From Lepidodermella squamata (lineage: Eukaryota > Animalia > Gastrotricha), in contig JBLDXI010000015.1 of the NCBI GenBank assembly GCA_047495785.1, forward strand, positions 4,526,001 through 4,590,000: a stretch of DNA of 64,000 nt, in the 5' to 3' direction. Shown here one piece after another: positions 23,058 to 63,195 of this stretch. Both the position numbers and the translations under genes were made by a program. Each line of letters begins with the position of its first letter. Position 1 is the first letter of the stretch. The notes under the pieces are model-generated. The model was not told where the DNA came from, ran no database searches, and saw nothing but the letters and a program-made list of their open reading frames with translations.

Positions 23058-24115
<1,058 letters not shown>

Positions 24116-27208: not shown

Positions 27209-28296
27209 ATGCCGGTAATTATTGGCGATGGGAAAGAAAAAGTTGTAATGGTGACTGGCGGTTCCGGTCTTGTGGGCAAGGCTATTCAGTGGGCCGTGAC
27301 GGAGGGCGGCCTGAGAAAGCCCGGAGAAAAATGGATATTTCTGAGCAGTCGAGACGGCGATTTGACGGTTGAGCCCGAGGTCAAAGCCGTTTTCGAACGA
27401 TTCCGCCCGACCCATGTCATTCACGTGGCAGCTTTTGTCGGCGGTCTGTTCAGAAACATGCGCTACCCGGCGGAATTTTTCGACAAAAACATCCTCATGA
27501 ACACGTACATCATCCATTACGCGCATGTTTACGGCGTTCAACGATGCATTTCAATGCTGTCAACGTGCATTTTCCCCGACGGAATTTCGCTGCCAATGAC
27601 TGAGAAAGATGTTAGATGAAGACACTTATTTTGACTGCCTAAGTATTTATCGATTTCAATTCGCACAGGTTCACACAGGTCCGCCGCATTACAGCAATTT
27701 CGCATACGCCTACGCCAAGCGAATGGTTGACGTTCAAAATGAGGCTTACAGCAAGCAGTACGGGTCGAAATTTTCCTCAATGGTTCCCGTAAATATTTAT
27801 GGGCCTCACGATAATTATTCGATCGAAGATGGCCACGTGATTCCCGGCTTGATGAACAAAATGTACATCGCTGAAAGTCAGTTCATTGCCATTTCACTCT
27901 CTGACTCACTAATTGATTTTCAAAATTTCAGAAAAAAATGAGCCGCTTGTTGTTTGGGGTACAGGCGTCGCGAGACGGCAGTTTGTTTACAGCCGCGATA
28001 TTGCACGCGCGCTTGTTTGGATGGCAGATCACTACGACGACTACCAGCCGATTATTTGTGTTGGCGATGAAGGCGAAATGACTATCAAAGATGTTGTGAA
28101 CAATGTCGCGAAAGGAATGGATTTCAAGGGCGAAATTAAATGGGACACCAGCCGAGCTGATGGCCAGTTCGCGAAGACTGCCTCGAATAAAAAGTTTCGA
28201 TCGCTGGCTCCTGATTTCAAATTCACGTCCTTTGAGACAGGCATTAAAGAAACTTGCGATTGGTTCAAAGCTAACTATGACACGGCGAGGAAATGA
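27209..28296 (+). CDS. GFUS: GDP-L-fucose synthase, copy 2 (3 exons)
   Basis: [43 protein letters not shown]; same two intron positions as copy 1. Confidence 0.95.
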
Positions 28297-28987
28297 GAAA
28301 ATATAACCTATGAATCATTTGTTTGTATCACACAGCCGATAAGCCATCGAACATATTTTGAATTTGCGATTTGTGTGCGTGGAGGGTTCTCTGTTACATT
28401 CTATCCATGGTAGTGTCCATGCCCCGTTAACATATCGAGTTCATTAGTAAATTGAGTTGGAAAAGCCTGGTTTTGTTTCTTTCCGCTATTTTATACTGCT
28501 CTAGGTATTGCCTTCAAATGCGGCGTAAACATTTGCTAAGAATACGAAAACATAGCGGGTAGATTTTTTCGAGTGCTCAGCGCCAGGGTGTTTAGGAAAG
28601 AAACGATCGTTCACGTCGGCCCATCAAATTATATATCATGAATAGCAACGCGAAAGCAACAACACAGCTACGGCGAGTTTTTTATGCTTGCCTCTCGGTA
28701 AGCACACCCTGGCGCCGTCCATTTAAATTACGCGATCGAATCAGAGCTGATCTTGAAGAGAAGCAGCGCAAGTAGTATAGGTAAACGCATGAACCACAGC
28801 GTATAACTTTCAGGAGTGACGAAAAGAGTGAAATGTACTAATACTATCAATGGCATGATGATGCTATTTGAAGGGTAAATGTGAACCGGCGATACAACAA
28901 AGATTTGTGCTCATTCGTTTGTAACGCCTGTATTGAATGCCGGATATGCGGCGCAAAAGTGTTACCGAACTCGCTGAATTTTGACGA

Positions 28988-30715
28988 ATGGCTGTCTTTA
29001 TAACAATCATAACAATCGCGCTCATATTTATCATTCCGGTCGTTGCGATGGACGAGTCACCTTACGAAAGTGATTGCTATCATTTCGGCAGTAAGACTGC
29101 CTATAACATCCAGAATTCGATCGATTGGCAGCGTATAATCCATGACGACGCACATTTAGATCCGACCTGCAAGCTATTTCACCTGCGATTGGTCGCCAGA
29201 CATGGCACTAGGTCACCTGATATAAAGAACATCGAGGGCGTTATAAAGGCCTTGGCACGGTTGAGGAACCCTAAATACGCGATGGCAGGTTCGGAAGAAC
29301 AGCAAGCTCTTCGAAACCTGACTCTGTCGTGGCAGAATCGACTGCCAGATGGGAAACGACTTTTAGAGCGCGGCCGGGCGGAGAACACACATTTGGCCCG
29401 CGAGTATTTCAGCCTGGTCGATCGCTTCAGTACGATTTTCATGCAGCGTAATGCATTTTTCTTCCAATCGACCGAAATCAATCGATCCCACGAATCTGGC
29501 GTCGCGTTCCGAGAAGAATTTGTGCGACTGATGCTGGCGGCCAACTACTCGAGTCGAGCGCAATTTTACATCAGTGACGTTGCGAAAAATGACAGTCGAT
29601 TATATTTCCACAAAGACTGCCCGGCATTCACGTATCGAGTGGACAAGAATAACTACACGTCAGCTGAAACTAAGCGAATTCGACTGACTACCGAAGCTCT
29701 TAATTTGATTGAAAAAATCAACAAACAGCGGCTCGGCCTGCCTGACATTGTTCTTGAATGGAGTGAGTCGAATAACTTTCATTCGGTCGTAAAACTAAAT
29801 TCTTTTGATCTTTTAGACAATATATTCGCACTTTACCAAATGGCAGCCTTCGAAAAAGCTGCATTAAACGACTCGATATTACTGCTTCTGTTCGACACGG
29901 AAGATCTGGAATTTCTCGAGTTCAGTGACGAGCTGGACATCTATTACAAGAAAGCCTACGGCCACCCGATGATAGCTGACATGAGCTGCGTCCTTACTAC
30001 GAATATTTTCGACGTAGCACAACGAAAACGCGCTGGTTATCCTGATTTTGACGGCATGTTTGAGTTCGGTCACTTGGAAACTCTTCTACCCGTTTACGCC
30101 GCGTTCGATCTGTTTAGAGATAGCCAAGAAGACTTTGTAGCAAATGCATCGAGAAATTTCATTAGAAATCGCAAATTCAGCATGTCCAAAGTTGGCCCAT
30201 TTGCCGCTAATTTCGCCTTTTTATTCGTGAGTTTTTATCCCGAGCTGAAACATTTTGGATTTTAGTTTCTTGTTTTACAGTTTTCTTGTCCCTCGGACGA
30301 GTTTAAAGTTCTGTTCCTCATCAACGGGAAGCCGTTTCCACTTTCCCGTGCTTGCCCCCATGACCTGGCCTGTCCCTTCGGCGACGTTCGAGCCGCGTAT
30401 GGCCTCGCAACTGGGCCATCATCGAAGTGCAAATTGAAAGAAATTTGCAAGCTCAACGAGTTCGAGCTTCGCCAACTCGAACGTATCAAAGGACAATCAG
30501 GCGCAGGCAAAAAGACGAATGAAGCTGAAACTTCACCAGACATTGTTGATGCTGGCTGGTCGGTGTTGTTTCTTTCTAATCACATGAATTTGATACTTCA
30601 GTTAATTTGTAACTTCGTTATATCGGCCCGATTTTCCACTGAGTCGCAATTCAATAATTGTTTATTGTTCACCAGCCTACTATGTTGCTTTGTGGGCGTC
30701 GAATTTTCGCGATGA
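28988..30715 (+). CDS. MINPP1: Multiple inositol polyphosphate phosphatase (histidine acid phosphatase)
   Basis: Signal peptide, FGSKTAY, catalytic RHGTRSP, YYKKAYG, FGHLETLLP, PFAANFAF; probable in-frame intron 29763-29816 and intron ending 30280. Confidence 0.88.
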
Positions 30716-30970
30716 GACTCTGCTTCAATTGAAATTTTCGTCTTGTTGATTTTCGTAAAAATAAATAAGTCTGAAAGTATGTACTTGATAGAAGATAAAA
30801 ACAAGCAGTGACTTGAATGAGAATTTGGGGTTGTTGCTCGAGATAAAAACTCTCCGACGCTACAATGATAACGACATACTCGCGATACCCTGATAGACTA
30901 AGACGTTCTCAGGCATATACTAACTCGCTAAATTCTACATCAACACAACCCAAGAAGTCTAGTCTAAATA

Positions 30971-31839
30971 ATGGCAACCCCCGAAGCCGAGCCGACTGCA
31001 AAGATGTTTAGGCTCGTCATGCTGGGCCAAGGCGGCAGTGGAAAATCTAACATTGCCGATCGATTCGTTAGAAATATCTATACAGATCCGCACAAGGTTA
31101 CATTAGGAGGTGAGAATATTGCTGAATTTTTCAAAAATAACATATTTCCAAGTTCAGTTGAACTCCAAACCTCGCTGATGACTATTGATACGGGGCATCG
31201 CGTTCGCTTTGAAATTTGGGACACCTCGGGACAGGAGCGATATGCGCAACTAGCTCCCATGTACTACAGGAATGCCCAAGCTGCCATCGTGGTCTACGAC
31301 ATTACCGACAAAGTATAGTCTAAATTTTTAATTCCCCACGCCAATCATGTAGGCCATGTATTTTCAGAGATCATTTAACCGTGCCAAAGAATGGGTCGCA
31401 GAGCTACAGCAAGCATTATCTGAAATCGTGATCGTATTGATTGGGAACAAAATTGATCTGGCTAACTACCGTGTCATTGAAACCATGGTATACCCCCAAA
31501 ATGTTTCCTATCATTTACCATAATTTACCTAAACCTCAACAGGATGCAGAGGTTTTCGCTGATGATAATAACTTGCTGTTTGCGGAAGTTTCTGCGAAAA
31601 CTGGCATCGGAATCCATGACCTGTTTGAGAGGCTTGCGAAGCGCCTTACGAACGACATGTTGTCATCACTGCCACCAAGTGCCCGCCATAATGTGCCTGC
31701 GCCTCAATACGCTATCTCAGTCTCGTCGCCATCGAAAGTAATCAAACTTAACCAAATGGATATGGGCGAGCCAGAAAGTTCAGCACCAAGCATCAGCAAT
31801 AACAGAAATTCAGAGGCCAAAAGTGGAGGTTGCTGCTGA
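30971..31839 (+). CDS. Rab5-subfamily small GTPase (divergent)
   Basis: [55 protein letters not shown]-terminal GGCC prenylation site. Confidence 0.88.
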
Positions 31840-31998
31840 ATGACTAATGCCCATATATCGGGTTAATTCTAGTTCCCTAGTTTCTGAGATTTCCAAACTA
31901 ATAAATACCATTTTCCAATTCATGGTGCGAATACTTTTTTACTCTTTGCGGAATAAATGCGGTAAAATAAATTGTATTCTGAGCATTTGCGCTATTTT

Positions 31999-32966
31999 TC
32001 ACATTATCTTCAGAGTTCCAGTCGTCCCAGACAGAAATTGGGCTGATTGCTGTTGTTGCAGCTTTTTGATCGCAGCCATTTCGATTAGCTGGTTGAACAT
32101 ATTTTCCACGGATTTGGCGTCGTTTGCTGTGGCGCAAGATGTCTGATAGAACTTGAGATCTTGGCTGGCCGCAAAATCTTTAATTTCTTTGAGCGAAGGA
32201 TCATCGGAATTTCGCCCGATTTTCTAGAGGAAACAAGTTAAATTTTTAAATAAATTATTAAATTAATCAATCAAACCAAAAGATCGCATTTATTCGCGCA
32301 GACGGCCAACGTAAATGGCCGTCGCCGCTGATTGATTCGCGCAAGCTCGGCTTCTTGCTCAGCTTCAATTTCTTCGTCCCAATCGTCGTCTATCGCGTCG
32401 TTTTGCGGCCCGTGGTGCTTGCTGTTTTTCGGCTTCCGGCAATATTTGTCGACCTCGTCCCGATAGGCCTTGAGCACTGGTGCTTGGTCAGCCGGACTCA
32501 ACGACACGTCGCTCACAAGCAGACAGATGTCAGTCTCAGCGTACAGTTCATTTCGAACTTGGAAGAACTCATCGCGCCCAGCGCAGTCCCAAAAGTTAAC
32601 GCGAACCTCGACGTTACCGAATTCTTGCGTCCGGCAGTTGTGGATTTTGAAGCCGTAGTCAACGCCTACGGTCGGCTGGTACACTGCATGGTACTTACCC
32701 TCGCAAAATAGCCGAATAAGTGAGGTTTTGCCTGATAGTTGCGGGCCGATTAGCAATATTTTTACCCAGATGAATCGAGCTAGTTCATCGTTAATTCGCT
32801 GGGTAATCAACTGGCGAAAATTTGTCAACGTGTCTAATTGCGAACCAACTTGACCAGCGAAGAGAAGCGAGCTTTTAGGAGCCACGGAACTGCTAGCAGT
32901 TGGCGGACGTTTTGCTGAAGGCGTTCGACGCGACTTGGCCGAACCAGGTGTGACTAATCTCGACAT
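31999..32966 (-). CDS. RJL-family (DNAJC27/RBJ-like) GTPase without a J domain, 2 exons
   Basis: GPQLSGKT, YQPTVGVDYG, VNFWDCAGRDEFFQVRNELY, ANKCDL, YQTSC; second exon ends GTLKIM-TGA at 31999; no CAAX. Confidence 0.75.
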
Positions 32967-47209: not shown

Positions 47210-47540
47210 TAATATAGATGAAAACCGTTGCCCGTTGCTATCTCCTACGTCATTCAGCGTGAATCTTTGGTCTTGAAGAAATCCGTGCATATTTTACAGA
47301 GCGCTAATAGTTAGTTTGTTTAAAGGTCATTAGGTGACACCTTGAGGTCTTTCGCTGTTGAACATCGGCTAATTTTCGCACTTGCTTCACTGTTTCAAGT
47401 TCTTATGCGTATTGCACTAGCCACGTTACACTAAAAGCATAAACTTGCTTCTTCGCACAGTAGCTTATTGCCGTTCGTTTCAAGAACTGTCACTGTAATT
47501 ATTTCTGCTCACTGTAGTGTATGATATATTTGGCATTTTC

Positions 47541-47813
47541 ATGATTCGACGACCTCTTAAGGCAATCGAGTTGAAAAAAGAAGACATCAGGCAAGAACTT
47601 CAAGAGTTGGAACAACGTGTTTTGCGTGCTCCGGCGACTGAAATTAAAACAGAAGAAACTGCGAAGAAGCCATCAGCAGTCGGAACTCCCGATACCCCTG
47701 CTGAGCTTCGAACCCCAGGTGCAGATACCATCGAGATTCGTCAACGCATTGGCTATCAAACTCCAGCTCAGACAAGTACCCCAGCTGACGGCCTTTTCTA
47801 CACTCCGCGTTGA
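47541..47813 (+). CDS. CDC26: Anaphase-promoting complex subunit CDC26 (APC12)
   Basis: 90 aa; MIRRPLKAIELKKEDIRQE matches the CDC26 N-terminal MLRRxPxxLELKxDDI pattern, plus the IRQRIGY motif. Confidence 0.75.
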   Translation: MIRRPLKAIELKKEDIRQELQELEQRVLRAPATEIKTEETAKKPSAVGTPDTPAELRTPGADTIEIRQRIGYQTPAQTSTPADGLFYTPR

Positions 47814-47816
47814 ATC

Positions 47817-50336
47817 ATGTCAGATAAACCGTCTACCAGCTCAAACCCTGCTCTTTTTAGCTTTGAGAATGAATCAGATAACAATTTTATCGGTGCTTTA
47901 CCAGACCCAGGTCAGCTGGACTCCGCTGCTAGCTCTGCCCCTGCTCGGCGTAGCCAAAATCTTCCAGAGGAAGCAACTCGTTTGTATGGAGAGGCTGCTG
48001 TCACTTATGCGAGAGGCAGTCGCGACGAAGCAAGGGTTTTATGCCTAGAAGTCGTTAAACTTGCTCCATCTTACGCCCCTGCTTACCAACTTCTTGCCAG
48101 TATTTGTGAGGATGAATCAAATATGGAGGGATATTTGCAGTACCAGTTAGTAGCCGCCCATCTGACGCCTGATGATTATGATCTATGGCTGCATTTAGCG
48201 GATATTGCGCTGGACAAAGCCAAAGCTGAAATGGCAAATGCGGAGTTACGTGAGAAACATTTTCAGCTGGCTGCGTTCTGCCTTCGTCGCGCTACTAAAG
48301 TCGTGCCTGCCACTTTCCCAAAATTGAGCATCTATGAGCGCTATCTGCTTACTCTTGAGAACAAACCCGTGAAGCAATATCAGGTATTGCAGCAAATATT
48401 GGGAGATTGTTACCCTCAAATGTTTCATGCCGAGTACATGGCAGCGTTCAGAAGTTATGCCAATCACTCTGCTAAAGCTGGAGATCATGCATCGGCCGTT
48501 AATGCCATGTTGAGTGCTTCGTTTTATTGTCCTGAGCATTTTCAAGCCAGCGACTACGACTTGGTTCTACAAAGTGGCTTTGCTGCGAAAATGTGGTGCC
48601 ATGTCATCGTTTTCTATAGTCGCTTGAACATGGTCCGGCTTGTCTCGTCGGAAACTCGCCTGCCGATTAATGTGAGGTCAAGCCCAAACGTTGATGGTGA
48701 TGATACGAAACAACTGGACGATTGGTTGAAGAAAACTGCCCTCGGCGTTGAAGTTGATGTAAATCGTATGAATGACTACCTTATCAGCAGATTTGCCGCT
48801 GCTCTACTCTATATTTCTTGCCCCTTGAAAGTGGTTCAGCCTCTTGCCATGCTGTTCTCCAAACGTGTTTTGCCGCAGATTGATAATCCCGCAAGGTTCA
48901 ACGATTATTTGATCGTTTCCAGAGCCGCCGCTACTGTAAATACGTTATATCATTCTTTGGTCTGCTCGCTGATCGAACCTCTTCTTGGCACTTCAAAGAC
49001 TTCCCTTGAAGCTTCGAATCCAGATGTCGCAACTGCTATTGAAATCAATTTATGGTACGCTAATGCAAAAACTGCAATGGGTGATCTGAATGGGGCTGCT
49101 CATTTTTACAAAAAAATTCTCGAAGCAGCCCCGCAACACATTCATGTACGTCAAGCGTTGGCTGATGTTTTCTCGAAGCTCGATAATCGAGCTGCTGCGA
49201 TCTCGGTGCTGACGGAGAAATTCCCGCTCGACAATCTGACAGTTGACGAGTTTGCGCTTCGTCTCGCACAGTGTTCCGTTTTATCTCAGTGTTCAGGTTG
49301 CGAGGACGCATTTTTGCAATCATCAACTCACCTTCTGTTCGGCGACAAAAGTGACGAAGTCGATGATAAAACGTTGACTGTTTTCGCGAATGTGCACACT
49401 GCGCGTTTGTTTTGCTCACCAGCCGGCTCTCAAAGCGACGATTTGGACTTCTTTTGTCCTCCTCTTCACACCGCTACCTTACAAATGCCGATCAGGCGCT
49501 TGACTCTTCCCCACAGTTGGTTTCCGCAAATTTGGGAGGTGTTCGAGCGGTTATGCAATATTCACTTTGATCGAGGCGAGTACATGCCTCTTTTTCGATT
49601 GCTGATTTTCTGTTTCTTTGCTAACCCAATGCATGAGTTTGCAATTGAAAAAGTAAGGTACATCCTTCTAGTCGTTTGTTTCGCCATGCGGAAGTGGGAA
49701 ATAATCAATACCTGTGTGCGATCGATCATCCGAACCGGTGTCATGAAAGGTTTGACCGAATTTCCGAATTCCGTTTGGAATATGTTGGCGATGTCCTCTT
49801 CACATCTGGACGATATGCGAGCTGTCACGCGAAGCATTACTAGAATTATCGGTAAAAAGCAAACGCTCGAATGTGACGCGATTTACTACATGCTAGGCCA
49901 TGCTGCTTTTGTCCGCGGAAATTACCGAGTTGCTCTTCGCGAATACGGAAATTTGATCAAGCGCCGACCGAGTGATCCTATGTGCTACTTGATGGCCGGC
50001 ATGTGTTTTATCCAACTATCTGCCAATAAATTTCGCAACGGCAGGCCACTTCTCGTCTACCAGGCCATGTGCTGCTTCGAGCGATATCGTGAATATCGAG
50101 GTGACTGTCAGGAAGTTTTTCTCAACATCGGACGCGCCATGCATCACATTGGTTTTACATACATTGCCGCTGATTATTACCGCCGGTGTCTTGAAATGCC
50201 CCCGGTTTGTGGACCACAAGGTGGTACCTACGACTTGCGATCGGAGGCTGCGTTCAATTTGTCTCAAATTTGCCGGCGTAGTGGTTCAGCTACTGCGGCT
50301 CGTTATTTCCTGTCTAAATATTGCGTAGTAGAATAA
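47817..50336 (+). CDS. GTF3C3: General transcription factor IIIC subunit 3 (TFIIIC102/Tfc4), intronless
   Basis: TPR protein: LYGEAAVTYARG...LEVVKLAP..AYQLLA..YQLVAAHLTP; C-terminus QEVFLNIGRAMHHIG...YDLRSEAAFNLSQI...KYCVVE. Confidence 0.92.
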   Translation: MSDKPSTSSNPALFSFENESDNNFIGALPDPGQLDSAASSAPARRSQNLPEEATRLYGEAAVTYARGSRDEARVLCLEVVKLAPSYAPAYQLLASICEDESNMEGYLQYQLVAAHLTPDDYDLWLHLADIALDKAKAEMANAELREKHFQLAAFCLRRATKVVPATFPKLSIYERYLLTLENKPVKQYQVLQQILGDCYPQMFHAEYMAAFRSYANHSAKAGDHASAVNAMLSASFYCPEHFQASDYDLVLQSGFAAKMWCHVIVFYSRLNMVRLVSSETRLPINVRSSPNVDGDDTKQLDDWLKKTALGVEVDVNRMNDYLISRFAAALLYISCPLKVVQPLAMLFSKRVLPQIDNPARFNDYLIVSRAAATVNTLYHSLVCSLIEPLLGTSKTSLEASNPDVATAIEINLWYANAKTAMGDLNGAAHFYKKILEAAPQHIHVRQALADVFSKLDNRAAAISVLTEKFPLDNLTVDEFALRLAQCSVLSQCSGCEDAFLQSSTHLLFGDKSDEVDDKTLTVFANVHTARLFCSPAGSQSDDLDFFCPPLHTATLQMPIRRLTLPHSWFPQIWEVFERLCNIHFDRGEYMPLFRLLIFCFFANPMHEFAIEKVRYILLVVCFAMRKWEIINTCVRSIIRTGVMKGLTEFPNSVWNMLAMSSSHLDDMRAVTRSITRIIGKKQTLECDAIYYMLGHAAFVRGNYRVALREYGNLIKRRPSDPMCYLMAGMCFIQLSANKFRNGRPLLVYQAMCCFERYREYRGDCQEVFLNIGRAMHHIGFTYIAADYYRRCLEMPPVCGPQGGTYDLRSEAAFNLSQICRRSGSATAARYFLSKYCVVE

Positions 50337-50382
50337 ATTTCATACAACTATTAATTTTGATTTATATAGGACCTTATTAAAA

Positions 50383-50802
50383 CTGTCTTCCAATATCGTT
50401 CAATACGTTCTATTGCGAAAGGACTTGATTACTTTACCCAACTGGTCTTTTGGATCTGTCGTAGCTCAAGGTGAGGAACTTGACGATGAAAAGGGCTGGA
50501 ACATAATTTCTTCAATATTTATAGGTTGCCACGCCTGTGTAGCTGCTATTCATTTGTTCGGCAACTCTCCGACGACTCAGGCTTACTTGGAAAGTGAGTC
50601 ACTTGGTCGTATGAGAAAAGTTGTTCTTGAAGTAAACGACGAATCCCATTTACTGCAGTTACGAGATAAACTAGCCGCTGCTAACATCGATTTTCATCTT
50701 TGGGTCGAACAACCGGAAAACTTCCCGACTTGCATTGCTTTGCGCCCCTACGTTAAAGAGGAACTTGGTCAATTGTTGCGTGGATTGAAACTTTATAAAT
50801 AA
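50383..50802 (+). CDS. PTRHD1: PTH2-family peptidyl-tRNA hydrolase domain protein PTRHD1; no N-terminal ATG, CTG 50383 is the candidate start
   Basis: [11 protein letters not shown]...WSFGSVVAQ|GCHAC...MRKVVLEV...[24 protein letters not shown]; 54-nt intron 50471-50524. Confidence 0.88.
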
Positions 50803-52556
50803 TGAGATACCTATCGCGCGTTTTACTATCTGGTCGGCGCTGGCTCAGTGCCCAGCCCGCATCTTCCAAGGCGAGTTCGAACAAACAAGCCAATCAGCCA
50901 GCCGATAAGAAATATAATATGCCCGAATACCGGCCGCTTTACTTGGACCACCAAGCTACTACCCCGGTCGATCCTCGCGTCTTGGATGCGATGTTGCCTT
51001 TCATGGTCGGCGAATACGGCAACCCTCACAGCCGAACTCACGCATATGGTTGGGAAACAGAGGCTGCAGTGGAGAAAGCCCGTCGTCAAGTTGCTTCGGT
51101 CATCAACGCTGATCCGCGTGAAATCGTTTTCACAAGTGGTGCCACCGAATCAAACAATGTAATTGCATTACAGTATTCATTTTACATGATATAAGTAATT
51201 GAATTCGATTGTAGCAAACAATTTTTATACAATAATCGATATACCTAAACGGTTAATTTTGTGTCTCGAAAACATGCTTATCACCGTTTTTCTGTTTTAA
51301 TTCAGATGGCCATTAAAGGCGTTGCTCGTTTCTACAAGCAAAAGCGGAATCACATCATAACAGTGCAGACCGAGCACAAGTGCGTTCTGGATTCTTGTCG
51401 AGTGCTAGAAGCCGAGGGTATAAAGGTATTGATTGGTTTTCATTTTTTCGTGCTATGAAATATCGATTGAATCTAATTTTATCCCGTCAGTAATGGAAAT
51501 GATCTCGCATCATAATTTTATCTTATATTGATATCTTTTTCATTAGTTGATATATTTTTGGATGCCTACCATGCGTCGATAATTTTATTCTCATTCCAGG
51601 TCACATACATGCCAGTGCAGAAGAATGGAGTGATAGATCTAGCTGAGCTCGAAAAAGCATTTACTCCTCAGACGGCGCTTGTTTCAGTCATGACCGTGAA
51701 TAATGAAATCGGCGTCGTTCAACCGATGGCCGAAATTGGTCGAATGTGCCGTAGCAAAGGCGCGTTTCTTCACACCGATGCCGCCCAGGCTTTCGGAAAA
51801 ATCCCGATCGACGTGAACAAGCTTAACGTTGATTTAATGTCGATCTCCGGCCACAAAATCTACGGCCCTAAAGGCGTCGGAGCGCTGTATGTTCGACGCA
51901 GGCCTCGAGTTCGGCTGGAGCCACTGCAGTCGGGCGGCGGGCAAGAGCGAGGTCTCAGATCTGGGACTGTCCCAGCTCCGATCGTTGTCGGTCTTGGCGC
52001 CGCATCAGAACTGGCAATCAAAGAAATGGCATACGATAGTGCACATATCAATCGCCTGAGCGCAATGTTATGCAAAGGCATCGAAAGCCTAGAGCATGTT
52101 ATTCGCAATGGCGATCCTGTCCACGGATATCCGGGCTGTGTTAACTATTCGTTTGCCTACATCGAAGGCGAGTCGATGCTTATGGCGCTGAAAGACATTG
52201 CCCTTTCGTCTGGCTCTGCATGCACTTCAGCCAGTCTTGAGCCCTCATATGTGTTACGCGTAAGTTAGACTATCAGTTTCGACACTAAATTTCAAAAATC
52301 TGAAGAAAAAAAATAGAAATTTTCTCAATTCAGTTTCTAAAATTGACCTATGATCTCTTAGGCTGTTGGTGCCGAAGAGGACGTGGCGCACTCCAGTATT
52401 CGGTTCGGTATCGGCCGTTTCACAACAGAGGCTGAAATTCACTACACGATTGATCGTCTGAGACGTCACGTAACTCGTTTACGCGAATTATCTCCTCTAT
52501 GGGAAATGGTTCAAGAAGGCATAGACATCAAGTCCGTTAAATGGACGCAGCATTAA
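50802..52556 (+). CDS. NFS1: Mitochondrial cysteine desulfurase
   Basis: Arg/Ser-rich targeting peptide [87 protein letters not shown]-stop. Confidence 0.97.
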
Positions 52557-52992
52557 GCCAGAATTCGGCGAAAACCCCATATATTTTGCCAGCCTGATGA
52601 TAATAACAACCTAGTTGTTCTATTTCGCTGCTTAATCGATCGATTTCGGTCGTTTGTATACGTGGATCGCCGAGTAAAAAACTATCAACGTGTAAAGCCT
52701 TCCGTGCGTGATTGAATATTTACCTGCCCCACGCGCTCAACTCTGTTGATTTTTTGCGATGCGAGTGCCTCAAGCACGCGATTCATCTAAAACCTTTCTA
52801 GATTTCGCAGTATTGATTTTGTCTTGCCCCCCCCCCCCTAAAACAACGCGCTCGTGCTCCTACACGTGATTGCAGCGCGTATTCACAAGAGTTATCATTT
52901 TGCTGAACATAACTTTTATACTCTGTAGTTTTTTTTACGTTATCAATAATTAATTCATTAAAGTGCGTCGTTGAATTCACCTGATTGCTGCA

Positions 52993-54255
52993 ATGTCTGC
53001 TGACGCGAGTCAAAACAACAATAATAGCTGCAGCGCTCGACAAACACCGCCGGGCAGTCCGGCTTTTTCGAAATCACTGGTGAATCCGAATATATATGCG
53101 GAGGTCGGTTCGGCGGTGCCTCAGTCGCCTCAGAAAACATCGTCTGTTACTGCGAACCTGCCCGATCTCGTTGGAGGATTAGCTTCTTTGGCTGATTGCT
53201 CTCCGCGCTCTACGTCATCTGACGACTCGTTGATGCCTACGCTAGCTAATTTGGTCATGATTAATCGCGATGGAGCTGATACAGCCAATCAAAAGGTAGG
53301 AGCTAAATTTACATGCATGAATGCTCTTTCATCGTAGCTTTTTCCAGAGTGGCTCAAATAACGACCAACAACAGCAGCAGCCAATTGTCAAACGCAGCAG
53401 TAAGGACAATTCTGCGATGAACAGCCGCGGCGCGTCGACTGATGAGGATATTGAAGTTACGGTCGAAGCTGAGGGCATTGACCTCACCGGCTTGCCAAGT
53501 GCCTTGATTGTTGCCAACCTTCCCGACGCTCTTTTTCGTGACCCTGCCGTCAAGGTTAGTTCTGGCTTTGGAAATTTCGAATTCCGAAAATTTAGTCTTC
53601 TCAAATTTTCTATAAAATTTCCATTTTAACGTGAATCAAAATGAAGGATCAATATTTTTAGGCTCAATTTGAATCGATGTACAAAGCTGTTGATCCTGAT
53701 GTGAAATTCGGCTACTTCAAGTGCTTTCGCCGCGCCCGCCTGGCTTTCAGTTCGCCGTTGATTGCTACTCGTGTTCGTTTGCTCAGCCACGGCTCCAATT
53801 TTATGGGCAACGCCATCAAGGTGTACTACCACGAGAGTTACAGCTCGTCGTCGCCACGCCAACTCGAATTACCCGAACTCGAGAAGCAATTTCTCATCTC
53901 ACCCCCTGCTTCACCGCCCGTGGGCTGGGAGCAAAACCGCGAGGCTTCGCCGATTAATGGCGGGGTTAGCGCCGGAATTCTAACGCCCAGCGTGATGCCT
54001 CACGGGCCGGGTCCGATCACCGAGGAAGTAGCCGATGCCGTGCAGAGAAAACTCGTCATGCGCCAGTCACCCGCGGCCAATATTACAGGCCTCGAGCTGA
54101 TGGCTGCTCTTGCCAAACTCGTCCCTGGCGAGCAGACCGAAATTCTATCGCCTGGCCCTGGCAAACCGGGTATCGTCATCCAAACTTGCGAGGACGCTCC
54201 ATCTTTCGGCCTGAAGAAAATTCAGCAGACTCGATGCCCTGAACGAAAACACTGA
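52993..54255 (+). CDS. RCAN: Regulator of calcineurin (calcipressin)
   Basis: SALIVANLP, YFKCFRRARL, KQFLISPPASPPVGWEQ, PxIxIT-like PGIVIQT, QTRCPE. Confidence 0.93.
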
Positions 54256-55277
54256 TTGAAATTAAAGCCTGACTTTTCGAATGTTGCTATTTGAGTTATT
54301 TGTCGTGTTGCCCCGTGTCTTTCCTTTACGTAGCACAACATATGCTTTACCGAAGTTGAAATTGTTGTAGACTAGTCGTTGATATTACTCGTTGATTATT
54401 TTCTTATATCGGAAATCTGAACTTGACTGATGTTGTAACGTCATTTTCTTTCTCAAGGATTTCTCACGGTACTAATCGTAGCATCTTCTATTCTCAATTA
54501 AAGTCGACGTTGTTATCTCTCATCACATCCGCCGTGACTGCATATTTTTCTATTTCTGTTGACAAACATGACGAGTCTTTATTTCATTACATTTGATTGT
54601 GTCCCAGTTTTTTGACAATGTCTGGGGTATAACTTATTTTTGAAACTGTAAATACTGTACATAACCTGAGATAGCATTTTTGAAAAATAATAAATTGTCA
54701 TGCAGTATTGATTTGTTTTTTTCGCTGCTGAAAATTGGATCAGAGCCATTTTAGCATTTTTCGACGGGGATATAATATCGTATTTCGTCGAATCATGATG
54801 AATCATTGTAATTAAGGTACTCAAGATATTATCTGTGGATTATAAACGCTATAACCACAAGCTACTTCTCGATAGAATCGTTGCATAGATACTGCGCTAT
54901 CTGCAAAAAAGCCTGTGCGATCAATGAATGCATTACGCATCAATGAATTTACACGCGCCCTCGTGCCTACTCCTCGTGCGCATTTGTATCAAATAGTCAA
55001 ATTACATCGAGGGGTGAAAATCTACGCCCGTTTTACCGGCATATGAGTTGTGTTCAATGGGAGATCTCAAGCACAGGTTCAATAATTCATAGCATCACTC
55101 TCATGCAGTATAGCTGGCACGTATAAGTATCTAAGAATTTTATAGCAGGTCAAGTTTACACGCCGCCCAAAACTATTGTATACATAACATTGTGGTTTTG
55201 CTATTTAAAATTACTTCATATTTTTTGCCGGTTTTTTAGATATTTTATTTCTCAGATATTTATTGGAGCTACACACG

Positions 55278-56842
55278 ATGGGTGGCGAGACCGTGGGTTC
55301 AGGTGGACCAAAAATGCGTAGCATCATGCCGCCATGGTGGAAATGGATCGTACTTTGCGCGACAGTCTACATGAGTCTTGTCTGCAATGGCTACGCTTAT
55401 TGCTTCGGCTTACTAAAAATTCAACTTCAGGAGGAATATCCTAACGTATCACCCTGGTCTGTCGCAATTATTGGCGGCCTTGTACCAGCGATTTATTTGT
55501 TTTTGGCGCCATTCGGCATAGCAATCAACGAATTTTTCGGCGCTAGAATAACAACGATAGTCGGCTCCATCATGTCTGCGACTTGTTTCTTTTTAAGCTG
55601 GCTGAACGGCGGCGTGCTATTTAGAGCTGGTTTTGTAGTCGACCTGTTATGCCTCGGCGTTGGTCAAGGTCTGGCGTTTTCACTGCTATACGGGCCATGC
55701 GTAGCAGTACTACCTGGCTATTTCGGGTCAGACCAGTTATCATTAGCGACCGGGATAACGAACGCGGGCGCTTCTGCTGGTGTGATCATCTACGGATTCA
55801 TCTCCTACCCCCTGTTTGGCCACTTCGGTTGGCGGGGTACGATGCTGTTCTATTCTTTGTTGTCTCTTCACGGGGTTTTGGCCGGCTTGGCTTTTACCAA
55901 ATTGGTCCCAGTTAAAGAGCCGAAACCAGTCAAAAAGCAGGATGAACTCGAGCTGACTCCTACTGATTTGACCACGGAAGCTTTACTGGCCGATGAGAGC
56001 ACGACCGCCCCGAGTGTGGCTGTGATTCAGCCTCCTAAACGAACTTTCCTAACGGTTTTACGGAAATATTTCGACCCGAAACTGATTTGCCAAGGGCCAT
56101 TTCTCTGCCTGCTTGGATCTGCTGGTTTTTCGATTATAGGCTACTTCGTGCCAACTTTGCTGCTGCCAGGTCAAACTAAGCGGCCCGAGTTCAATGTGCA
56201 CCCGATAATTCAGAAAAACATCATGGTTGTGTTTGGTGTTTGCAACTTGATATCTCGCGTGCTCGTCGGGCGAATCGGCGATTACGGCCACAAATCGTTC
56301 TTCTGCACTTCGTTTTTCATGTTCGTTGGCGGCTTGATCGTCTCAGCCACCGCGTGCCTCGTCTTTCCTCACATTATGCAGTTCGGCAATGTTGCCTTCC
56401 TGGCTTTTGTTATCACATACGCATTTGCAGCTGGTAATTTTCAAAAAATATTTTTTTTTAAATTTGGAAATTTAATTTATTCATTTGTTCAGCTCCTGTG
56501 ATAGCCATGAGGTCATTGCTGGCTATTGACCTCTTCGGAAAATCGAACGCTAGTGCCTCGTTTGGCTGGTTTTTATGCGCACAAGGCTCTTTGCAAATGA
56601 TTGGATACGTTTTGCCATGTAAGAACCAGTTTGATCCACCTTGAATTGTTCAAATTTTTTTTTCATTTTTATCAGCTTGGTTTGATACTATTGGACCTTT
56701 ATTCGCGTATCTCTTCACTGCGTGCATGTTTCTTGGAGCTGCTGGAAGTTGTTCATTAACAATACGGCTATTCCTTTCCGAGCGGCGGAAGAAAATTGCG
56801 GCGATGAAAGCTGAAAAAGCTGCGAAAACTGAAACGAGTTGA
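55278..56842 (+). CDS. SLC16/monocarboxylate transporter-like MFS protein, copy 1
   Basis: PPWWKWIVL, FGARITTI, GVGQGLA...YF...LATGI, FGWRGTML, SRVLVGRIGD, DLFGKSNASASFGW; two 3' introns. Confidence 0.85.
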
Positions 56843-58600
56843 ATGAGATTTTGCCCTTGAATAAATTTGTAGATTTTCTTATAACGTTGAGTGTTGCATC
56901 CGATTTGACTGCCTCGGATATATCTCAGAACAAATTGAATTCTTGCTGAATACTGCCGACCAAATACTTTCTTGCTTTTGTTTAGAACCTTTGAGTGATT
57001 ATAGCTGGTCTAGAGTTTAGTTGAACCTAGTTCATCCGGTATTTTTTGTGCTAAAATATGGTTGTTGAAGACCTTTAAATTCAGAGTGACACCAACTTCC
57101 TCCTCATTCACATTCTAGGTTGTTTATTGCAAATTATGATAGTTTTTATTTGAGCGAATGCATAATTGCGATTAGAGTTTGTTTGTTTATTTTTACTTTT
57201 TTGGGTTTTGCCTGTTGCGGAGAATATTGAATTACTATTTTTTCTGTTCGCCTTTATATCTATTATATTCAGCAGAACAATCAATGATGTTGAATGCTGA
57301 TGATTGTTGTCAGACACTCATCTAAAACTTGCGAAAATGATTAACAATAATAAAAATTGGAAAAAGATGATGCTTTGTAATGTATTCGGGCTTTTACTGC
57401 ATCCGTATTCGGCTCAGCGGAATCTAATTTGCCGCCGATGAATAAAGCAGAAAATACGCTCAATATAACGGAGACTGCCCAGCAGCTAATGTTGCGTTTG
57501 CAAATATCATTACTCGAGCACTGAACGACAAAAATATGCACGAAGACAAGACGGAGGCGATGGCGCCGCGAAAACTATAATATTTTGGTCGAGCCACAAG
57601 GAGATGCGCACAATTTGTTCTCATCCCAAAAAACTAACATTCATTCTTATCCTCGACATTTTCCGAGTCAATCGTCCATTCATTATTGCAGCGAAACTTC
57701 TCATATCGCTCATTAATTTTTAGACACCTGGCATGACGTCGTAAAATATTGAGCCGAGAATATCGAGCCGGGGGCTAAGGAAAACTACCAGCATTCGTAA
57801 CATCGCAATGTAGTATAGACATAAAAAATCGTCTACGGTAAACACTGCAATAAAATGCGTCGCGCGTGCGCCACTTCATACGAGTATGACACTACGAGAA
57901 AAACGCCTATAAATTTTTGCATTCGCGCTTCCGCATCACGTTTTCGCTGACTACTGACCGGTGAATACATCTAATTAACAGAAATCTCGGCATCAATGTA
58001 ATATTTTGTAAGCCAATCCCATGCCTAGCACTTCCGATTATGTATATATTTCATCAGCTGCCAATGTTAACTCTGAATGGCGCACGCGCTTGCTTTGCAA
58101 GAAAAAACAAGCTATAGCGGTTAGGAAGTCAGTGCTAAAGATAATACGTCAGAACAAGACCCTTTTCACTATTGATAGCCTAATAATGCTATTGGAACGA
58201 GGCCGCCTATGTTTTTTTTATCTTAACCCAGTATGGCACGGCCCTCTATTAACGACCATACAGGAGACCGCGATAGCTGCTCTTCTAAAAAAAAGCCACC
58301 ATTTTTCTCATTCTTCTCCTATTAACTCCCGTGTCAATGATTTTGCATTGACATATCAAAATTTCTCTGTTTAATATTCATCGCTTTGCTCAGTTGAATC
58401 CTCCTCCGACCACCGAAAACTGAGCTCTGATGGTGATGGTTGAACTATTTTTAATTTTTCGCTTATGCCAAGTTTTAGCTTCGTGAATGCATTCTCTGCT
58501 ATCTGCTAACTAACCAGATATTAGCTTAAATGCTTTAGCCTGCAAAAGTCACAATATTATTCCTGGCATTTTAGGTGCTGTGTTTTAGTGTTTTAAAAGT

Positions 58601-60097
58601 ATGCCCGCGCAAACTGGCTTGCCGCCTTGGTGGCGGTGGGTGGTTCTAGCTGCAACTTTTTACATGAACGCCATCGTCAACGGTTACGCGTATTGCTTTG
58701 GTCTCTTGAAGATTCCGCTCGAGCAAGAATATCCAGAGGTTAGCCAGGCCCTACTAGCGTCGATAGGCGGCGCAATCAGTTCGATTTACATGTTTTTGGC
58801 ACCTCTGGCCATCGCTGTTCAAGAGCATTACGGCGCGCGGCTAACAACAATTGCGGCGTCATGTTTCTCTGCATTTTGTTTCATTATTTGCTGGTTAAAT
58901 GGAGCTTACTTCAAGGGCGGTTTCATCGTCGACTTATTGACCCTGGGCGTCGGACAAGGAATCGCCTTAGGTTTCCTATATGGGCCTAGCGTCGCCTTAC
59001 TGCCGAATTATTTCCCTCTCGATCAAATAGCTTTTGCTGCGGGTGCTACTAATGCTGGAACCTCTTTCGGAATCATTGTTTACGGTTTCATAACAAACCC
59101 TTTATTTTCTATCTATGGTTGGCGGGGCACTATGTTGTTCTACGCTGCTTTCGCCCTACAAGGTGTTGTAGCCGGTCTTGCTTTCATGACGATGAAATTG
59201 CCTGAGCCACCGAAACTCCCCGAGAAACTCGAAATGGCTGAGAAAACCGATGATGAAGAAGCTGCTAAAACCTTGATTCAACCTGTTAAGGAGGAACCCC
59301 CAAAAATGACGTTTTTACAACGTTTGCGGCGATTTTTCGACATCAAGCTTTTCATGCAATGGCCCTTTATAATGATGTTGTCTGCTGCTGCTTTTTCAAT
59401 CATCGGCTACTTCGTGCCTACTTTGCTAGTGCCCGGTCAGGCTAAGAAACCCGAGTATGAGGTGAATCCGTTCGTTGCCCGGTATATCATGGTCATTTTC
59501 GGCGTGTTAAACTTGACGGGTCGCATTATTATGGGCAAGCTGGGCGATCTCGGGTTCAAATACGCGATTTTTACGTCGTACTCATTGTACATCGGTTCGC
59601 TAGTCATTTCAGCTGCCACTTTGCTCATTTTCCCACACCTCATGTTCCTCGGCACTGTCGCTTTCATCGCTTTCGTTGTGATTTACGGCTTCGCCGCAGG
59701 TATGGCTTATTTTTAAAAAAATGTCCCTTGAAATTTTCAAGTTTCAAATTTACTAGCCCCGATTATAACAATGCGCTCAGTTTTAACGATAAATCTCTTC
59801 GGCAAGGCAAATGCCAGTGCTGCATACGGCTGGTTCATCGGTGCTCAAGGCTCACTTCAAATGATCGGCTTTATTTTCCCCGGTAAATTACCAAAAAGCG
59901 AGTTTTTTCAGCAATAACTTTGCTCTCTTATTTTAGCATGGTTGAATGCAAACATGGGGCCGTTGTATGCCTATGCTTTCGCCGCTAGTGCCTTTCTGAT
60001 CGCTGCGGTTTCGTGCGCAGTTACTTACAAGCCGTTCTTCGAAACTCGGAGAAAACAAATCGAAGAAGTCGCGCGAAGCAACGAAGCCAAATCATGA
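58601..60097 (+). CDS. SLC16/monocarboxylate transporter-like MFS protein, copy 2
   Basis: Collinear paralog of copy 1 (PPWWRWVVL, YGWRGTML, GRIIMGKLGD); same two introns. Confidence 0.85.
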
Positions 60098-61201
60098 AAT
60101 TACGTGTCAAATAGGCGATATTTTTATCTGTCACTTCAAGTCTCGAATTTGTGTACTTGTATTCATGTGCATATATTCAATGGTTCCCGTTTTCAAAATT
60201 TTACGAGAGAAAGAAGAGAAAATCAATAAAATCTTGCAGTCACTCGCTCTTGTGCCTCTCACATAAGCCGGGCGTAAAAAAATGACCTAGGATAGACGAA
60301 AATAACGTTATTTTATTCTTGTCCAGCACTGGGTTCAGAAAAGGAACTAACTACGGACAGCGCACTACATCAGCCTATAGTTTTCAATACGGCTATAGCG
60401 CTATGAAATGAATTACTACTAGCACCACAATACTGAATATACTATACGTGCTCGCAGTGGCCATTACCTTATATATTACGCGTATTATAAATTAGCTTGC
60501 GCGTCAAAAAAGCCAGTATTCATCCACGACGGGTAGCCAATGTAGTAGAGCGTAGAGCACAGCTTACATACCTAGCCGGCATTTTTCAATGAGATTCTCG
60601 AGTTGGTAATCCAGGAATATAAATGTGTAAAAAAAATAACTGATTCGCTTTCAGCTGCAGGCGATCACTAGGAAATTACGTCCTTTATACAACCCCGGAG
60701 AATCAGATAAATATGATCACTCTCAATCTTTCCCGTTGGTCATGATAGGAATAGCCTTTTATTTTTATAGCGATAACAAATAATTGTTTCTTGCTACTGA
60801 TATAACATTGTCTTCGTCCTTCATTGACCACATTGTTTACACATTTCCCCGAACTCCTTTCGGGATTCATGGGCTAGGCGATCTGCTGCCACCTTTAGCT
60901 TTATTTTGTGTGGAAAACTTGACCAATTTTCATCTCAGTTATTTGTACAGTTTTCTCATGTGCTATGTTTAAACACTTTTCAGGTTTTTGGCCCCTCAGT
61001 TATCATTAACGCGCATGCTAATTATTGTTGTTTAAAAGCGTGCAATATCATGACCGGTGTTTGGTGCGGTATACTCATCAGTAGCATAAAACAAAAGCAT
61101 GCAAAATTTTTTGTAGAGTTTACTGCTTCAACGAGCAAGATTTGTCTGCCCTCTGATTAATATGTTGTCCATTTCTCCAGAAATTTAGACATTATTTAGC
61201 G

Positions 61202-62790
61202 ATGGCACATGAGCATCATCACCACCATCACCACCATCACCAACCGGTGCAGATGCGAAGCATCATGCCGCCTTGGTGGCGATGGGTGGTTTTAGTTGCA
61301 TGTCTTTACATGAATCTCGTCGTAAATGGTAAGGTATCCCTGTTATTTCCTTGAAATCGAATCAGCATACAATTCTAGGTTATACCTACTGCTTCGGCCT
61401 GGTGAAAATACCTCTGATGACCGAGTATCCTGAAGTTTCGGCAGCAACTTTGGCCATTGTGGGGGGCATTGTTCCAACGATTTACATGTTCATAGCGCCA
61501 GTCGCCATTGCTATCACTGAATTCGTCGGTCCGAGACTTACCACGATATGCGCATCATCTCTCAGTGCCCTGTGTTTCGTTTTAACTTGGGCGAATGGTG
61601 CTTTCCTACATTGGGGATTTTATTTCGACCTCATGTGCCTTGGCATCGGCCAAGGTTTAGCTTTTGGTGGTCTTTACGGACCAAGTGTCGCAGTGCTGCC
61701 AACTTATTTTTCTCTAGATCAATTAGCTTTCGCCGCAGGGCTTGCCAATGCTGGTTCTTCTATCGGTGTCATTATCTACGGTTTTATTTCTAATCCTTTA
61801 TTTGAGATTTTCGGCTGGCGAGGAACAATGTTATTTTATGCTGGGATCTCTCTTCAAGGCGTCCTCGCTGGTTTGGCTTTCATGAAAATGGTCCCTGTGA
61901 AACAGCAGCCTTGCCCGTCTAGCCTACAACTTGCCGAACTAGGCAAAGACGAACCAGATTATACGGAAACTTTAGTTGAAGATGCCCAGAAACAAGAGCC
62001 GGAGGTTCCGAAGAAGGAATTTCTGCCGATACTGAAACGATATTTCGATTTAAACATGTTCAAACAATGGCCATTTGTTTGCGTAATTGCATCGGCTGGA
62101 CTTGCCATCGTCGGTAAGAATAAGATAACCCGGCAACTTAGCTAATTAATGCTATTCCAATATATTCTAGGGTACTTTGTTCCGACTCTTCTCCTACCTG
62201 GTCACGCGAAAGATCCTAAGAATGGAGTTCACAAATTTGTCGCGCCATATATAATGAGCATTTTCGGCATAATGAATCTCATAGGGCGAATAGTCTTGGG
62301 CAAAGTCGGAGATCTGGGCAACCGCTACGCCATATTTACGCCATACAGCTTGTACAACGCATCACTGATACTAGGAGCGATATGTTTTCTTGTTCTGCCG
62401 CATGTTATGTTTCTCGGAACGATTTCTTTCGTCACTTTCGCTGTACTTTACGGCTTCTCATGTGCACCGATTATCATCATGCGATCACTTCTAACAACGA
62501 CTTTATTTGGGAAAAAGAACGCAAGCGCTTCGTATGGCTGGTTTTTGTGTGCACAAGGCGGCTTGCAGATGTTCGGCTACGTCTTACCAGGTGGGTGGAT
62601 TTATTAGAGTTTTGTTTGAATTTATTAAAACTTCTCTACAGCCTTGCTGGAAGAAAAGCTTGGGTCGTCTTGGGCTTACTCTTTTGCTGCTCTCATGTTC
62701 CTGCTCTCATCACTTGCCTGTAGCTCTACTTTCAAACCATATTTCGAAGCAAGGAGAAAGCAACTGGAGGAAATGAAAACGAAAAGCTAG
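61202..62790 (+). CDS. SLC16/monocarboxylate transporter-like MFS protein, copy 3, with N-terminal His9
   Basis: MAHE-H9-QPVQMRSIMPPWWRWVVL; introns 61330-61378, 62114-62170, 62591-62641; stop TAG 62788-62790. Confidence 0.85.
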
Positions 62791-63195
62791 CAATTAACTT
62801 AGCATAGGCATCGCTATGTGATGAAATTTTAACCAAAATGCGAGGTTTCGCCTGTTCACGTTTTTACTACATAATTTGTTGTCTCGTGTTCGTCATCCTT
62901 CTGCTTAATATTTTACTAAACAAAAGTACTTCGTAAAAGCTAATGAAGAAGCTGAATGCTAAACATTAGAGTTTTGGAGGAATGTGATGCAAGAAGCATC
63001 TGGTTTGAAAAGGCTCCAAAAGCATCCATTGCCTATTTCGATTTCGATAAGGGGGAATGATGGTTCACTCTGAAAAATTACAGGACTTTTCCAACATAAT
63101 AACACGCTTTTTCGGTAAAGAGGCAATCTCTGTGCTGCGTACCGCTGCTCAGGCAACAAAACTTTCCCATGGCATATCGCTGATAGCAAGGCTCG

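Follow-up and report, generated by a model that had tools for sequence, protein, structure and literature searches.

Four genes of the same orientation stand almost end to end in the stretch of 64,000 nucleotides (nt) of the Lepidodermella squamata genome analysed here (contig JBLDXI010000015.1, positions 4,526,001 to 4,590,000; called the window below). They occupy 47541-52556 on the + strand, and the gaps between them are 3, 46 and -1 nt. How are these genes transcribed and translated? On balance, and with modest confidence, we read them as two separate and conserved bicistronic transcription units placed head to tail. The first unit would encode a CDC26-like protein of 90 amino acids and then GTF3C3, and the second would encode PTRHD1 and then the mitochondrial cysteine desulfurase NFS1. 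We hold the bicistronic tier of this reading firmly for PTRHD1-NFS1, and it is probable for CDC26-GTF3C3. The coordinates and gaps given by a first-pass annotation of the window were all reproduced on the sequence. Its 46-nt gap is correct as a distance, but it runs to a CTG at 50383 and not to an ATG, and PTRHD1 has no in-frame ATG before 50611. Two other species were compared with the window. The second species is represented by an ocean metagenome contig (L001) and recurs in L002 and L032-L035; the third is represented by two short contigs, L003 (Logan run ERR1712137) and L004 (JGI 3300019039). The genome of the window is compact, with a GC content of about 0.44 and introns of 54-174 nt, and the locus is made up of the following open reading frames (ORFs), exons and spacers.

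47541..47813, + strand: CDC26-like ORF, ORF1 of the first pair, 90 amino acids, stop TGA
47814..47816, + strand: spacer ATC between the two ORFs, 3 nt (8 nt in the second species)
47817..50336, + strand: GTF3C3, the TPR subunit of TFIIIC, ORF2 of the first pair, 839 amino acids, without introns, stop TAA at 50334-50336
50383..50470, + strand: PTRHD1 exon 1, counted from a conserved CTG that is proposed as a non-AUG start
50471..50524, + strand: PTRHD1 intron, GT..AG, 54 nt, at the same position in the second species and gone from L003/L004
50525..50802, + strand: PTRHD1 exon 2, stop TAA at 50800-50802; the sole ATG of the ORF, at 50611, is in frame
50802..51158, + strand: NFS1 exon 1, with its ATG at 50802 overlapping the PTRHD1 stop (TAATG)
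51306..51425, + strand: NFS1 exon 2
51600..52259, + strand: NFS1 exon 3
52362..52556, + strand: NFS1 exon 4, stop TAA at 52554-52556

GTF3C3 of the window matches human GTF3C3 in PDB with E = 9e-51 and yeast tau131 with E = 2e-12. All of its named homologues are GTF3C3, the best being 29-38% identical, and the best named matches of the neighbouring HEATR5 reach about 35% identity. For these two proteins the best named matches come from bivalves, cephalopods, a nemertean, a centipede, crustaceans, amphioxus, Ciona and vertebrates. PTRHD1 matches Pfam PTH2 with E = 2.6e-18 and its best named homologues are animal PTRHD1 proteins of 50-60% identity; the spliced model with the 54-nt intron was checked by translation. 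NFS1 matches human NFS1 with E = 3e-105 and has the aminotransferase class-V fold. It consists of four exons and three introns, and translation of the spliced model gives a product of 443 amino acids. For ORF1 of the first pair, the top Pfam match is ANAPC_CDC26 (PF10471) in both the window and the second species, over residues 1-28 and with E = 0.019 and 0.039, respectively; the scores of 15-16 bits are below the family cut-off of 24.5. Sequence and profile searches of PDB with ORF1 did not recover CDC26. Inspected by eye, the protein has N-terminal and RIGY motifs that we take to be typical of CDC26. Since the Pfam match is sub-threshold, the label "CDC26-like" is to be taken as weakly supported.

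Where does PTRHD1 start? Its frame is open from 50332 and the first ATG in the frame is a conserved internal methionine at 50611. All three species lack an ATG start. Conservation begins exactly at the CTG codon (50383), which has A at -3, is kept in the three species, and lies five to six codons ahead of the IVQY motif. Counted from this CTG, the protein has 121-122 amino acids, which is the normal length of the family. Translation from the CUG is most likely on these grounds. A start-enhancing hairpin after the CUG was looked for and is not conserved (z = 0.1, -2.3 and 1.1 in the three species). Might an AUG be brought in by splicing? The PTRHD1 frame is in phase 1 at the putative acceptor in the window and in phase 0 in the second species. 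This difference excludes, at those acceptors, a start codon supplied by a spliced leader (SL) or by a conserved upstream coding exon. A cis-splice from GT 50325 or 50328 to 50370 was also rejected: it would keep the frame of GTF3C3 and not that of PTRHD1, and the messenger RNA (mRNA) of the third species described below is without GTF3C3. Another donor, GT 50312, is in phase with PTRHD1, yet it is a poor one (GTCTAA) and unsupported.

Is the arrangement kept in related species? Among the proteins searched, GTF3C3 has one close relative (P0001, 70% identity), which is encoded on L001. This contig carries HEATR5 (on the - strand), the CDC26-like ORF, GTF3C3, PTRHD1, NFS1 and calcipressin in the same order as the window. 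The CDC26-like ORF (8735-9007) is followed after a gap of 8 nt by GTF3C3 (9016-11550), and there are 101 nt from there to the CTG at 11652. PTRHD1 again has no ATG start, its intron position is as in the window, and its stop is TAG at 12077-12079; the NFS1 ATG stands 2 nt past this stop, at 12082, and calcipressin lies downstream. Between the window and the second species, the CDC26-like ORF is 71% identical. The identities at codon positions 1/2/3 are 0.77/0.81/0.36 for the CDC26-like ORF, 0.71/0.83/0.40 for GTF3C3, 0.76/0.92/0.41 for PTRHD1 and 0.76/0.87/0.36 for NFS1. As far as the sequences tell, all four ORFs diverge in the manner of coding regions under purifying selection. The third species was found by a search with PTRHD1 exon 2 (P0220, 68%), and the PTRHD1 of L003/L004 is 68-70% identical. 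PTRHD1 homologues elsewhere are of ordinary length (118-122 amino acids), and in the two whose contigs were fetched, P0223 and P0230, NFS1 is not the next gene downstream. For this reason the PTRHD1-NFS1 pairing appears to be specific to the lineage of the window, L001 and L003/L004. Judging by its preservation in the second species, and by the fact that among the eight tight ATG-ORF pairs of the whole window an ATG-free first ORF is found only in these two, the four-gene arrangement is more than chance. Exact look-ups of the ORF1 and GTF3C3 proteins of the window found no record, and scans of metagenome_contigs, genome_contigs and viral_contigs found no further relatives of the locus. The exact look-up of the CDC26-like protein of the second species returned genomic contigs from two samples only and no transcript.

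The third species gives a view of the second unit at the RNA level. On L003/L004, PTRHD1, its stop TGA, a spacer of 4 nt and the NFS1 ATG all lie on one molecule, and both the PTRHD1 intron and the NFS1 introns are absent. L004 starts with ACATGGGG, which we take to be the 3' end of the SMART template-switch oligo, and then continues with a 29-nt leader. The two samples presumably come from the Tara Oceans project. The metatranscriptomes of Tara Oceans were made with oligo-dT and SMART chemistry for low-input samples (PMC5538240). Because the introns are absent and the oligo remnant is present, we read L003/L004 as spliced, polyadenylated mRNA whose 5' end is 44 nt upstream of the CTG. This mature PTRHD1-NFS1 mRNA, seen in L004, excludes GTF3C3 sequence.

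Do the first ORFs bear the marks of scanning ribosomes? Each of them has one ATG, which corresponds to 2.4-3.7 per kilobase (kb), while GTF3C3, NFS1 and HEATR5 have 17-25 per kb (window and second species). To calculate the expected number of ATGs, the protein was held fixed and the codons were drawn from the codon usage of the genome. The number of out-of-frame ATGs in PTRHD1 is 0, against 3.4 expected in the window (P = 0.009) and 4.6 expected in the second species (P = 0.001). L004 has 1 ATG in the 417 nt ahead of the NFS1 AUG and 20 in the following 828 nt. Between the ORF1 and ORF2 starts of the first pair there is no AUG in the window or the second species; between those of the second pair there is a single in-frame AUG of weak context in all three species. 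The start contexts are ordered in a similar way in the two pairs. The AUG of the CDC26-like ORF has T at -3 in the window and the second species, a weak context, and no other ATG occurs in any frame of this ORF; in both, the -3 base of the GTF3C3 AUG is A. The internal AUG of PTRHD1 is again weak, with C at -3 in each of the three species, and the -3 base of the NFS1 AUG in the three species is A, G and A. A weak start of ORF1 and a stronger start of ORF2 are characteristic of bicistrons decoded by leaky scanning, and the two pairs have both. The first-pass annotation had claimed two mRNAs, each decoded bicistronically with the small ORF first. This claim holds up for PTRHD1-NFS1 on the L003/L004 contigs, the gene order in the second species, the ATG depletion and the start contexts. 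For CDC26-GTF3C3 the gene order, the lack of internal ATGs and the start contexts agree with it, but the ATG absence is not significant, as discussed below.

How could two proteins be made from each of these mRNAs? Each capped mRNA would be scanned from its 5' end, and a minority of ribosomes would initiate at the poor first start, which would be an AUG with U at -3 for the CDC26-like protein and a CUG, with no AUG start, for PTRHD1. The remaining ribosomes would pass the AUG-cleared ORF and initiate at the AUG of the large ORF, which has a purine at -3; that is, they would reach it by leaky scanning. The ATG depletion together with the weak first starts argues for scanning as the main route. 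The stop-to-start distances are -1 to 8 nt, and some termination-reinitiation may also occur. The PTRHD1-NFS1 mRNA would be made from its own promoter of the TATA/initiator type, overlapping the last codons and the stop of GTF3C3. With such a promoter at the end of GTF3C3, the 33-nt spacer would be a compact border between two genes rather than an operon joint. Leaky scanning, the use of the CUG and the position of the promoter in the window are what we infer from sequence comparison.

At the junction between the two pairs, these elements bear on the question of promoter or operon joint.

50315..50321, + strand: TAAATAT, TATA-like, in the last GTF3C3 codons, a candidate core promoter element 27 nt before A50342
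50332..50337, + strand: AATAAA over the GTF3C3 stop, a possible poly(A) signal (in the second species TATAAA, 3 nt past the stop)
50337..50343, + strand: ATTTCAT, a conserved TCA initiator-like motif; L004 starts with ATCAC at the corresponding place
50351..50359, + strand: TTAATTTTG, a spacer motif, also at 11596-11603 in the spacer of the second species and at 28-35 in the L004 leader
50368..50369, + strand: AG, the trans-splice acceptor proposed by the first-pass annotation; the mRNA of the relative reads through the equivalent position

The L004 leader contains TTAATTTG just ahead of an AG that is 15 nt before the CTG; in the window the corresponding distance is 13 nt. The motif TTAATTT(T)G is common to this leader and to the GTF3C3-PTRHD1 spacers of the second species, where it stands right before TAG, and of the window, where it has the extra T. 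Its background is 0.06-0.08 per kb per strand, and about 0.003 occurrences are expected per spacer. The only other block kept between both spacers is ATTTCAT, at 50337-50343 in the window and at 11566-11572 in the second species. The latter has a second TTTCAT at 11581-11586, and a TATAAAA at 11554-11560 is 31 nt before A11585 of this copy. Since TTAATTT(T)G sits in the local genomic spacers of two other species, the L004 leader has the look of a collinear genomic sequence rather than of a spliced leader. A leader derived from an SL RNA should not match the local spacer, so the sharing of the motif speaks against trans-splicing. Comparison with chaetognath leaders showed no resemblance, and no match is known to nematode, rotifer, Ciona or Oikopleura leaders. 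The literature search for the leader string gave no paper containing it, and Rfam gave no SL RNA match within the window. We consider an independent transcription start site (TSS) of the PTRHD1-NFS1 mRNA moderately probable and a 5' end made by trans-splicing unlikely; what remains falls to other origins. The first-pass annotation had proposed a single pre-mRNA, resolved by poly(A) cleavage and SL trans-splicing at AG 50368-50369. This part of it is not supported by the mRNA of the relative, whose 5' end is a separate one. What this 5' end points to is a TSS of the second unit within or close to the 3' region of GTF3C3, which the annotation itself had listed as evidence against its proposal. 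A common leader brought from elsewhere was not found on the downstream mRNA either: the L004 leader shares its motif with the local spacers.

Several points weigh against two separate units and should be noticed. The complementary DNA status of L003/L004 rests on the missing introns, the oligo remnant and the presumed origin of the run, and the TSS of PTRHD1-NFS1 is carried over from the relative to the species of the window. The bicistronic status of CDC26-GTF3C3 is a deduction from the sequence. At the synonymous level the absence of ATGs from the CDC26-like ORF lacks significance, with 1.0 and 0.0 expected, and the test has no power for this ORF, whose protein is without internal methionine. 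In PTRHD1, one in-frame AUG (50611) is still present. The motif argument is post hoc; correction for about 20 possible 8-mers brings the joint chance to about 0.003-0.02. The overall similarity between leader and spacer is weak, with the window score reached by 29% of the control windows, and it is marginal in the second species (2.6% of the control windows). Tracts rich in T and ending in TAG are found 9-26 nt ahead of the first ORF of either unit and of some other genes, as they are in genomes with trans-splicing. A promoter within a coding region is also unusual in animals.

Could the locus then be an operon? The alternative would have one promoter upstream of CDC26 and a four-ORF pre-mRNA, which is polyadenylated at 50332 and trans-spliced to an SL at 50368-50369 to give two bicistronic mRNAs. 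The AATAAA over the GTF3C3 stop and the T-rich stretch that follows it up to AG 50368-50369 are exactly as the first-pass annotation gave them, and this stretch ends in TATAG. From the GTF3C3 stop to the T-rich tract ending in TAG there are 33 nt in the window and 56 nt in the second species. Both spacers are inside the intergenic distance of 60 nt taken as the limit for operons in Oikopleura. From the poly(A)-like hexamer to the AG there are 31 nt in the window (AATAAA 50332-50337 to 50368-50369) and 46 nt in the second species (TATAAA 11554-11559 to 11605-11606). A hexamer at the GTF3C3 stop and an unpaired AG are what an SL operon would have; they are also compatible with a TATA box and a 5' untranslated region (UTR). 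The AG that ends the L004 leader so close to the CUG, with its counterpart in the window, would also suit an operon, as would the acceptor-like sites 9-26 nt upstream of several start codons and the long runs of co-oriented genes. Some of the T-rich/AG tracts upstream of start codons in the window and the second species are clear cis introns. Against this alternative, the leader motif is encoded in the local spacers of the window and the second species, seemingly in place; the leader is unlike those of chaetognaths and the others compared, and no SL RNA family is found in the window. The acceptor phases, 1 in the window and 0 in the second species, exclude a start codon supplied by a leader or an exon. 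We regard the operon as unlikely, although it survives best among the alternatives. Slightly less likely again is the complete two-tier scheme, with an unknown spliced leader, both mRNAs bicistronic, and PTRHD1 made from the CUG only. If it is true, operon processing, leaky-scanning polycistrony and obligatory non-AUG initiation would all meet in a single animal locus.

There is a further question, whether ORF2 of each pair is reached mainly by termination-reinitiation, the kind of coupling that certain viral RNAs show at UAAUG-type junctions. Once ribosomes have translated ORFs of 90-121 codons, as these are, reinitiation is normally inefficient unless special elements are present. It would also not account for two observed features, the selection against ATGs in ORF1 and the weak start of ORF1, and with a CUG start it would tie the essential NFS1 to a rare initiation event. 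What favours it is the spacing: in every species compared, the start of ORF2 lies -1, 2 or 4 nt from the stop of ORF1 in PTRHD1-NFS1 and 3 or 8 nt from it in CDC26-GTF3C3, and very short spacing favours reinitiation according to a study of algal bicistrons (PMC11291117). As the main route, reinitiation seems doubtful.

Less probable still is a set of separate monocistronic mRNAs, in which the TSS of GTF3C3 and of NFS1 would lie inside the preceding small ORF and the bicistronic RNA of the relative would be minor read-through. Overlapping transcription units are possible in compact genomes, and for CDC26-GTF3C3 the look-up that returned no transcript and the ATG statistics leave room for this explanation. 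The ATG depletion of PTRHD1, however, is significant in two species and is the same in the third, and it is hard to explain without scanning. In addition, the assembled L003/L004 mRNA contigs are bicistronic, and the order of a weak and then a strong start context is conserved. The last alternative, a short non-coding 5' exon upstream of CDC26 that is cis-spliced alternatively to AG 47515-47516 or AG 50368-50369, is very improbable: in the window and the second species an acceptor-like site does precede the CDC26 ATG by 23-24 nt, and such sites also precede PTRHD1, but in neither species did the 1.2-1.5 kb ahead of CDC26 contain a leader-like sequence followed by GT, and the leader motif is located in the local spacer instead.

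Two other candidates were tried and rejected. Stop readthrough fusing the CDC26-like ORF to GTF3C3 would be in frame in the window (47811-47819, TGA ATC ATG) but not in the second species, where the gap is 8 nt; the shared frame in the window is probably accidental. The tight ORF pair 61351-62145 and 62149-62607 represents two exons of one MFS gene with a 56-nt intron.

Around the locus, gene structure and spacing differ between the window and the second species. The first NFS1 intron of the window (51159-51305, 147 nt) is missing in L001, where the first coding exon is continuous (12082-12549); this is a gain or loss between species that are 22% divergent in the NFS1 protein. Introns are absent altogether from GTF3C3 (2.5 kb) and from most of HEATR5 (6.9 kb). 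NFS1 and calcipressin are separated by 436 nt in the window (52556-52993), including a run of 11 C at 52828-52838, versus about 95 nt in L001 (13723-13818). L001 thus has five co-oriented ORFs in series, with spacers of 8, 101, 2 and 95 nt. Ahead of the CDC26-like ORF of the window there is an upstream ORF of 7 codons, ATG ATA TAT TTG GCA TTT TCA TGA, at 47520-47544, whose stop overlaps the CDC26-like ATG (ATGA). It is relevant only if the 5' UTR extends there, and it is closely preceded by a T-rich tract that ends in TAG (47502-47516). Motifs resembling TTAAT..ATTTG or TTCATTAATTT are seen 20-50 nt upstream of the CDC26-like and calcipressin starts, at 47494-47507 and 52944-52958 in the window and at 8683-8693 and 13783-13795 in L001, comparable to the PTRHD1 leader. 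They may be a lineage-specific element of the core promoter or the 5' UTR.

The 19-nt leader string was also searched in metagenome_contigs, a collection without short transcript contigs of the L004 type, and matched 19 unrelated G/T-rich repeats. The G/T-rich repeat element with this string is found in L007-L023, from JGI samples Ga0214542-Ga0214545, Ga0099822/3 and Ga0209589. Elsewhere in the window, long runs of co-oriented genes on the + strand are found at 17000-32000 and 47500-63000, with some spacers near 100 nt. They include an RBM22-like zinc-finger/RRM protein, an EGF-like membrane protein, a mitochondrial carrier, an epimerase, a histidine phosphatase and three tandem MFS transporters. 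One such spacer runs from the stop at 19541 to the next ATG at 19650, and TTATTTTTAG lies 9 nt upstream of this ATG.

How do the two proposed units compare with known systems? Insects, including Drosophila, have dicistronic genes, i.e. animal mRNAs with two conserved unrelated ORFs and short spacers, but their gene pairs differ from those here. We know of no insect case with an ORF1 lacking an AUG start, though that literature was not searched specifically. Viral RNAs use termination-reinitiation at an overlapping UAAUG, as in M1/BM2 of influenza B and in caliciviruses. The window resembles them in that the PTRHD1 stop overlaps the NFS1 start as TAATG. Unlike them, the overlap is not kept in the relatives, which have gaps of 2 and 4 nt, and the ATG depletion favours scanning. 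Non-AUG initiation is used in cells for the N-terminally extended MYC (CUG) and for DAP5/eIF4G2 (GUG), and in both settings a near-cognate codon with a purine at -3 starts a functional protein. What would differ here is that the CUG is proposed as the sole start of a housekeeping enzyme and as the gate to a second cistron. The SL operons of Oikopleura, Ciona, nematodes and chaetognaths share with this locus the co-oriented genes, the spacing of tens of nt, the hexamer at the stop and the T-rich stretch with AG. Their mature mRNAs are monocistronic, however, while here two ORFs are kept per mature mRNA; the leader here is seemingly encoded by the spacer, and no spliced leader was found.

The closest parallel is with the bicistronic nuclear genes of green algae and plants, which are decoded by leaky scanning and include CDC26/TTM3 (PMC11291117). 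In that source CDC26 is ORF1 of the conserved CDC26/TTM3 bicistron, also according to a plant study cited there. The likenesses are an ORF1 that is small, conserved and weak in its start context, the lack of other AUGs ahead of ORF2, ORFs that overlap or are only a short distance apart, conservation of both products and of the arrangement across species, and CDC26, or here a CDC26-like protein, as ORF1. There are also differences. The host here is an animal, GTF3C3 replaces TTM3, and PTRHD1-NFS1 is a new pair. One ORF1 here has no AUG and apparently starts with CUG, while the term "non-AUG" is never used in PMC11291117. The two units here stand head to tail, 33 nt apart, and are known from sequence. 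New here would be the animal host, the gene pairs, a CDC26-like ORF1 paralleling that of plants, and an ORF1 without an AUG start.

What does the locus mean for gene expression in this lineage? Green algae and plants have recently been shown to have conserved bicistrons decoded by leaky scanning, and in animals such bicistrons are mostly known from scattered cases. In the locus described here GTF3C3 and NFS1, both essential, are kept behind small cistrons across species that differ at 30% of residues. The presence of a CDC26-like ORF1 here and of the CDC26 bicistron in plants suggests convergence. If the CUG of PTRHD1 is true, it would be a natural near-cognate start that makes a housekeeping protein and at the same time determines in what proportion one mRNA yields its two proteins. 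The locus would also show how far gene boundaries can be compacted in an animal genome, with a promoter probably overlapping the stop codon of the neighbouring gene.

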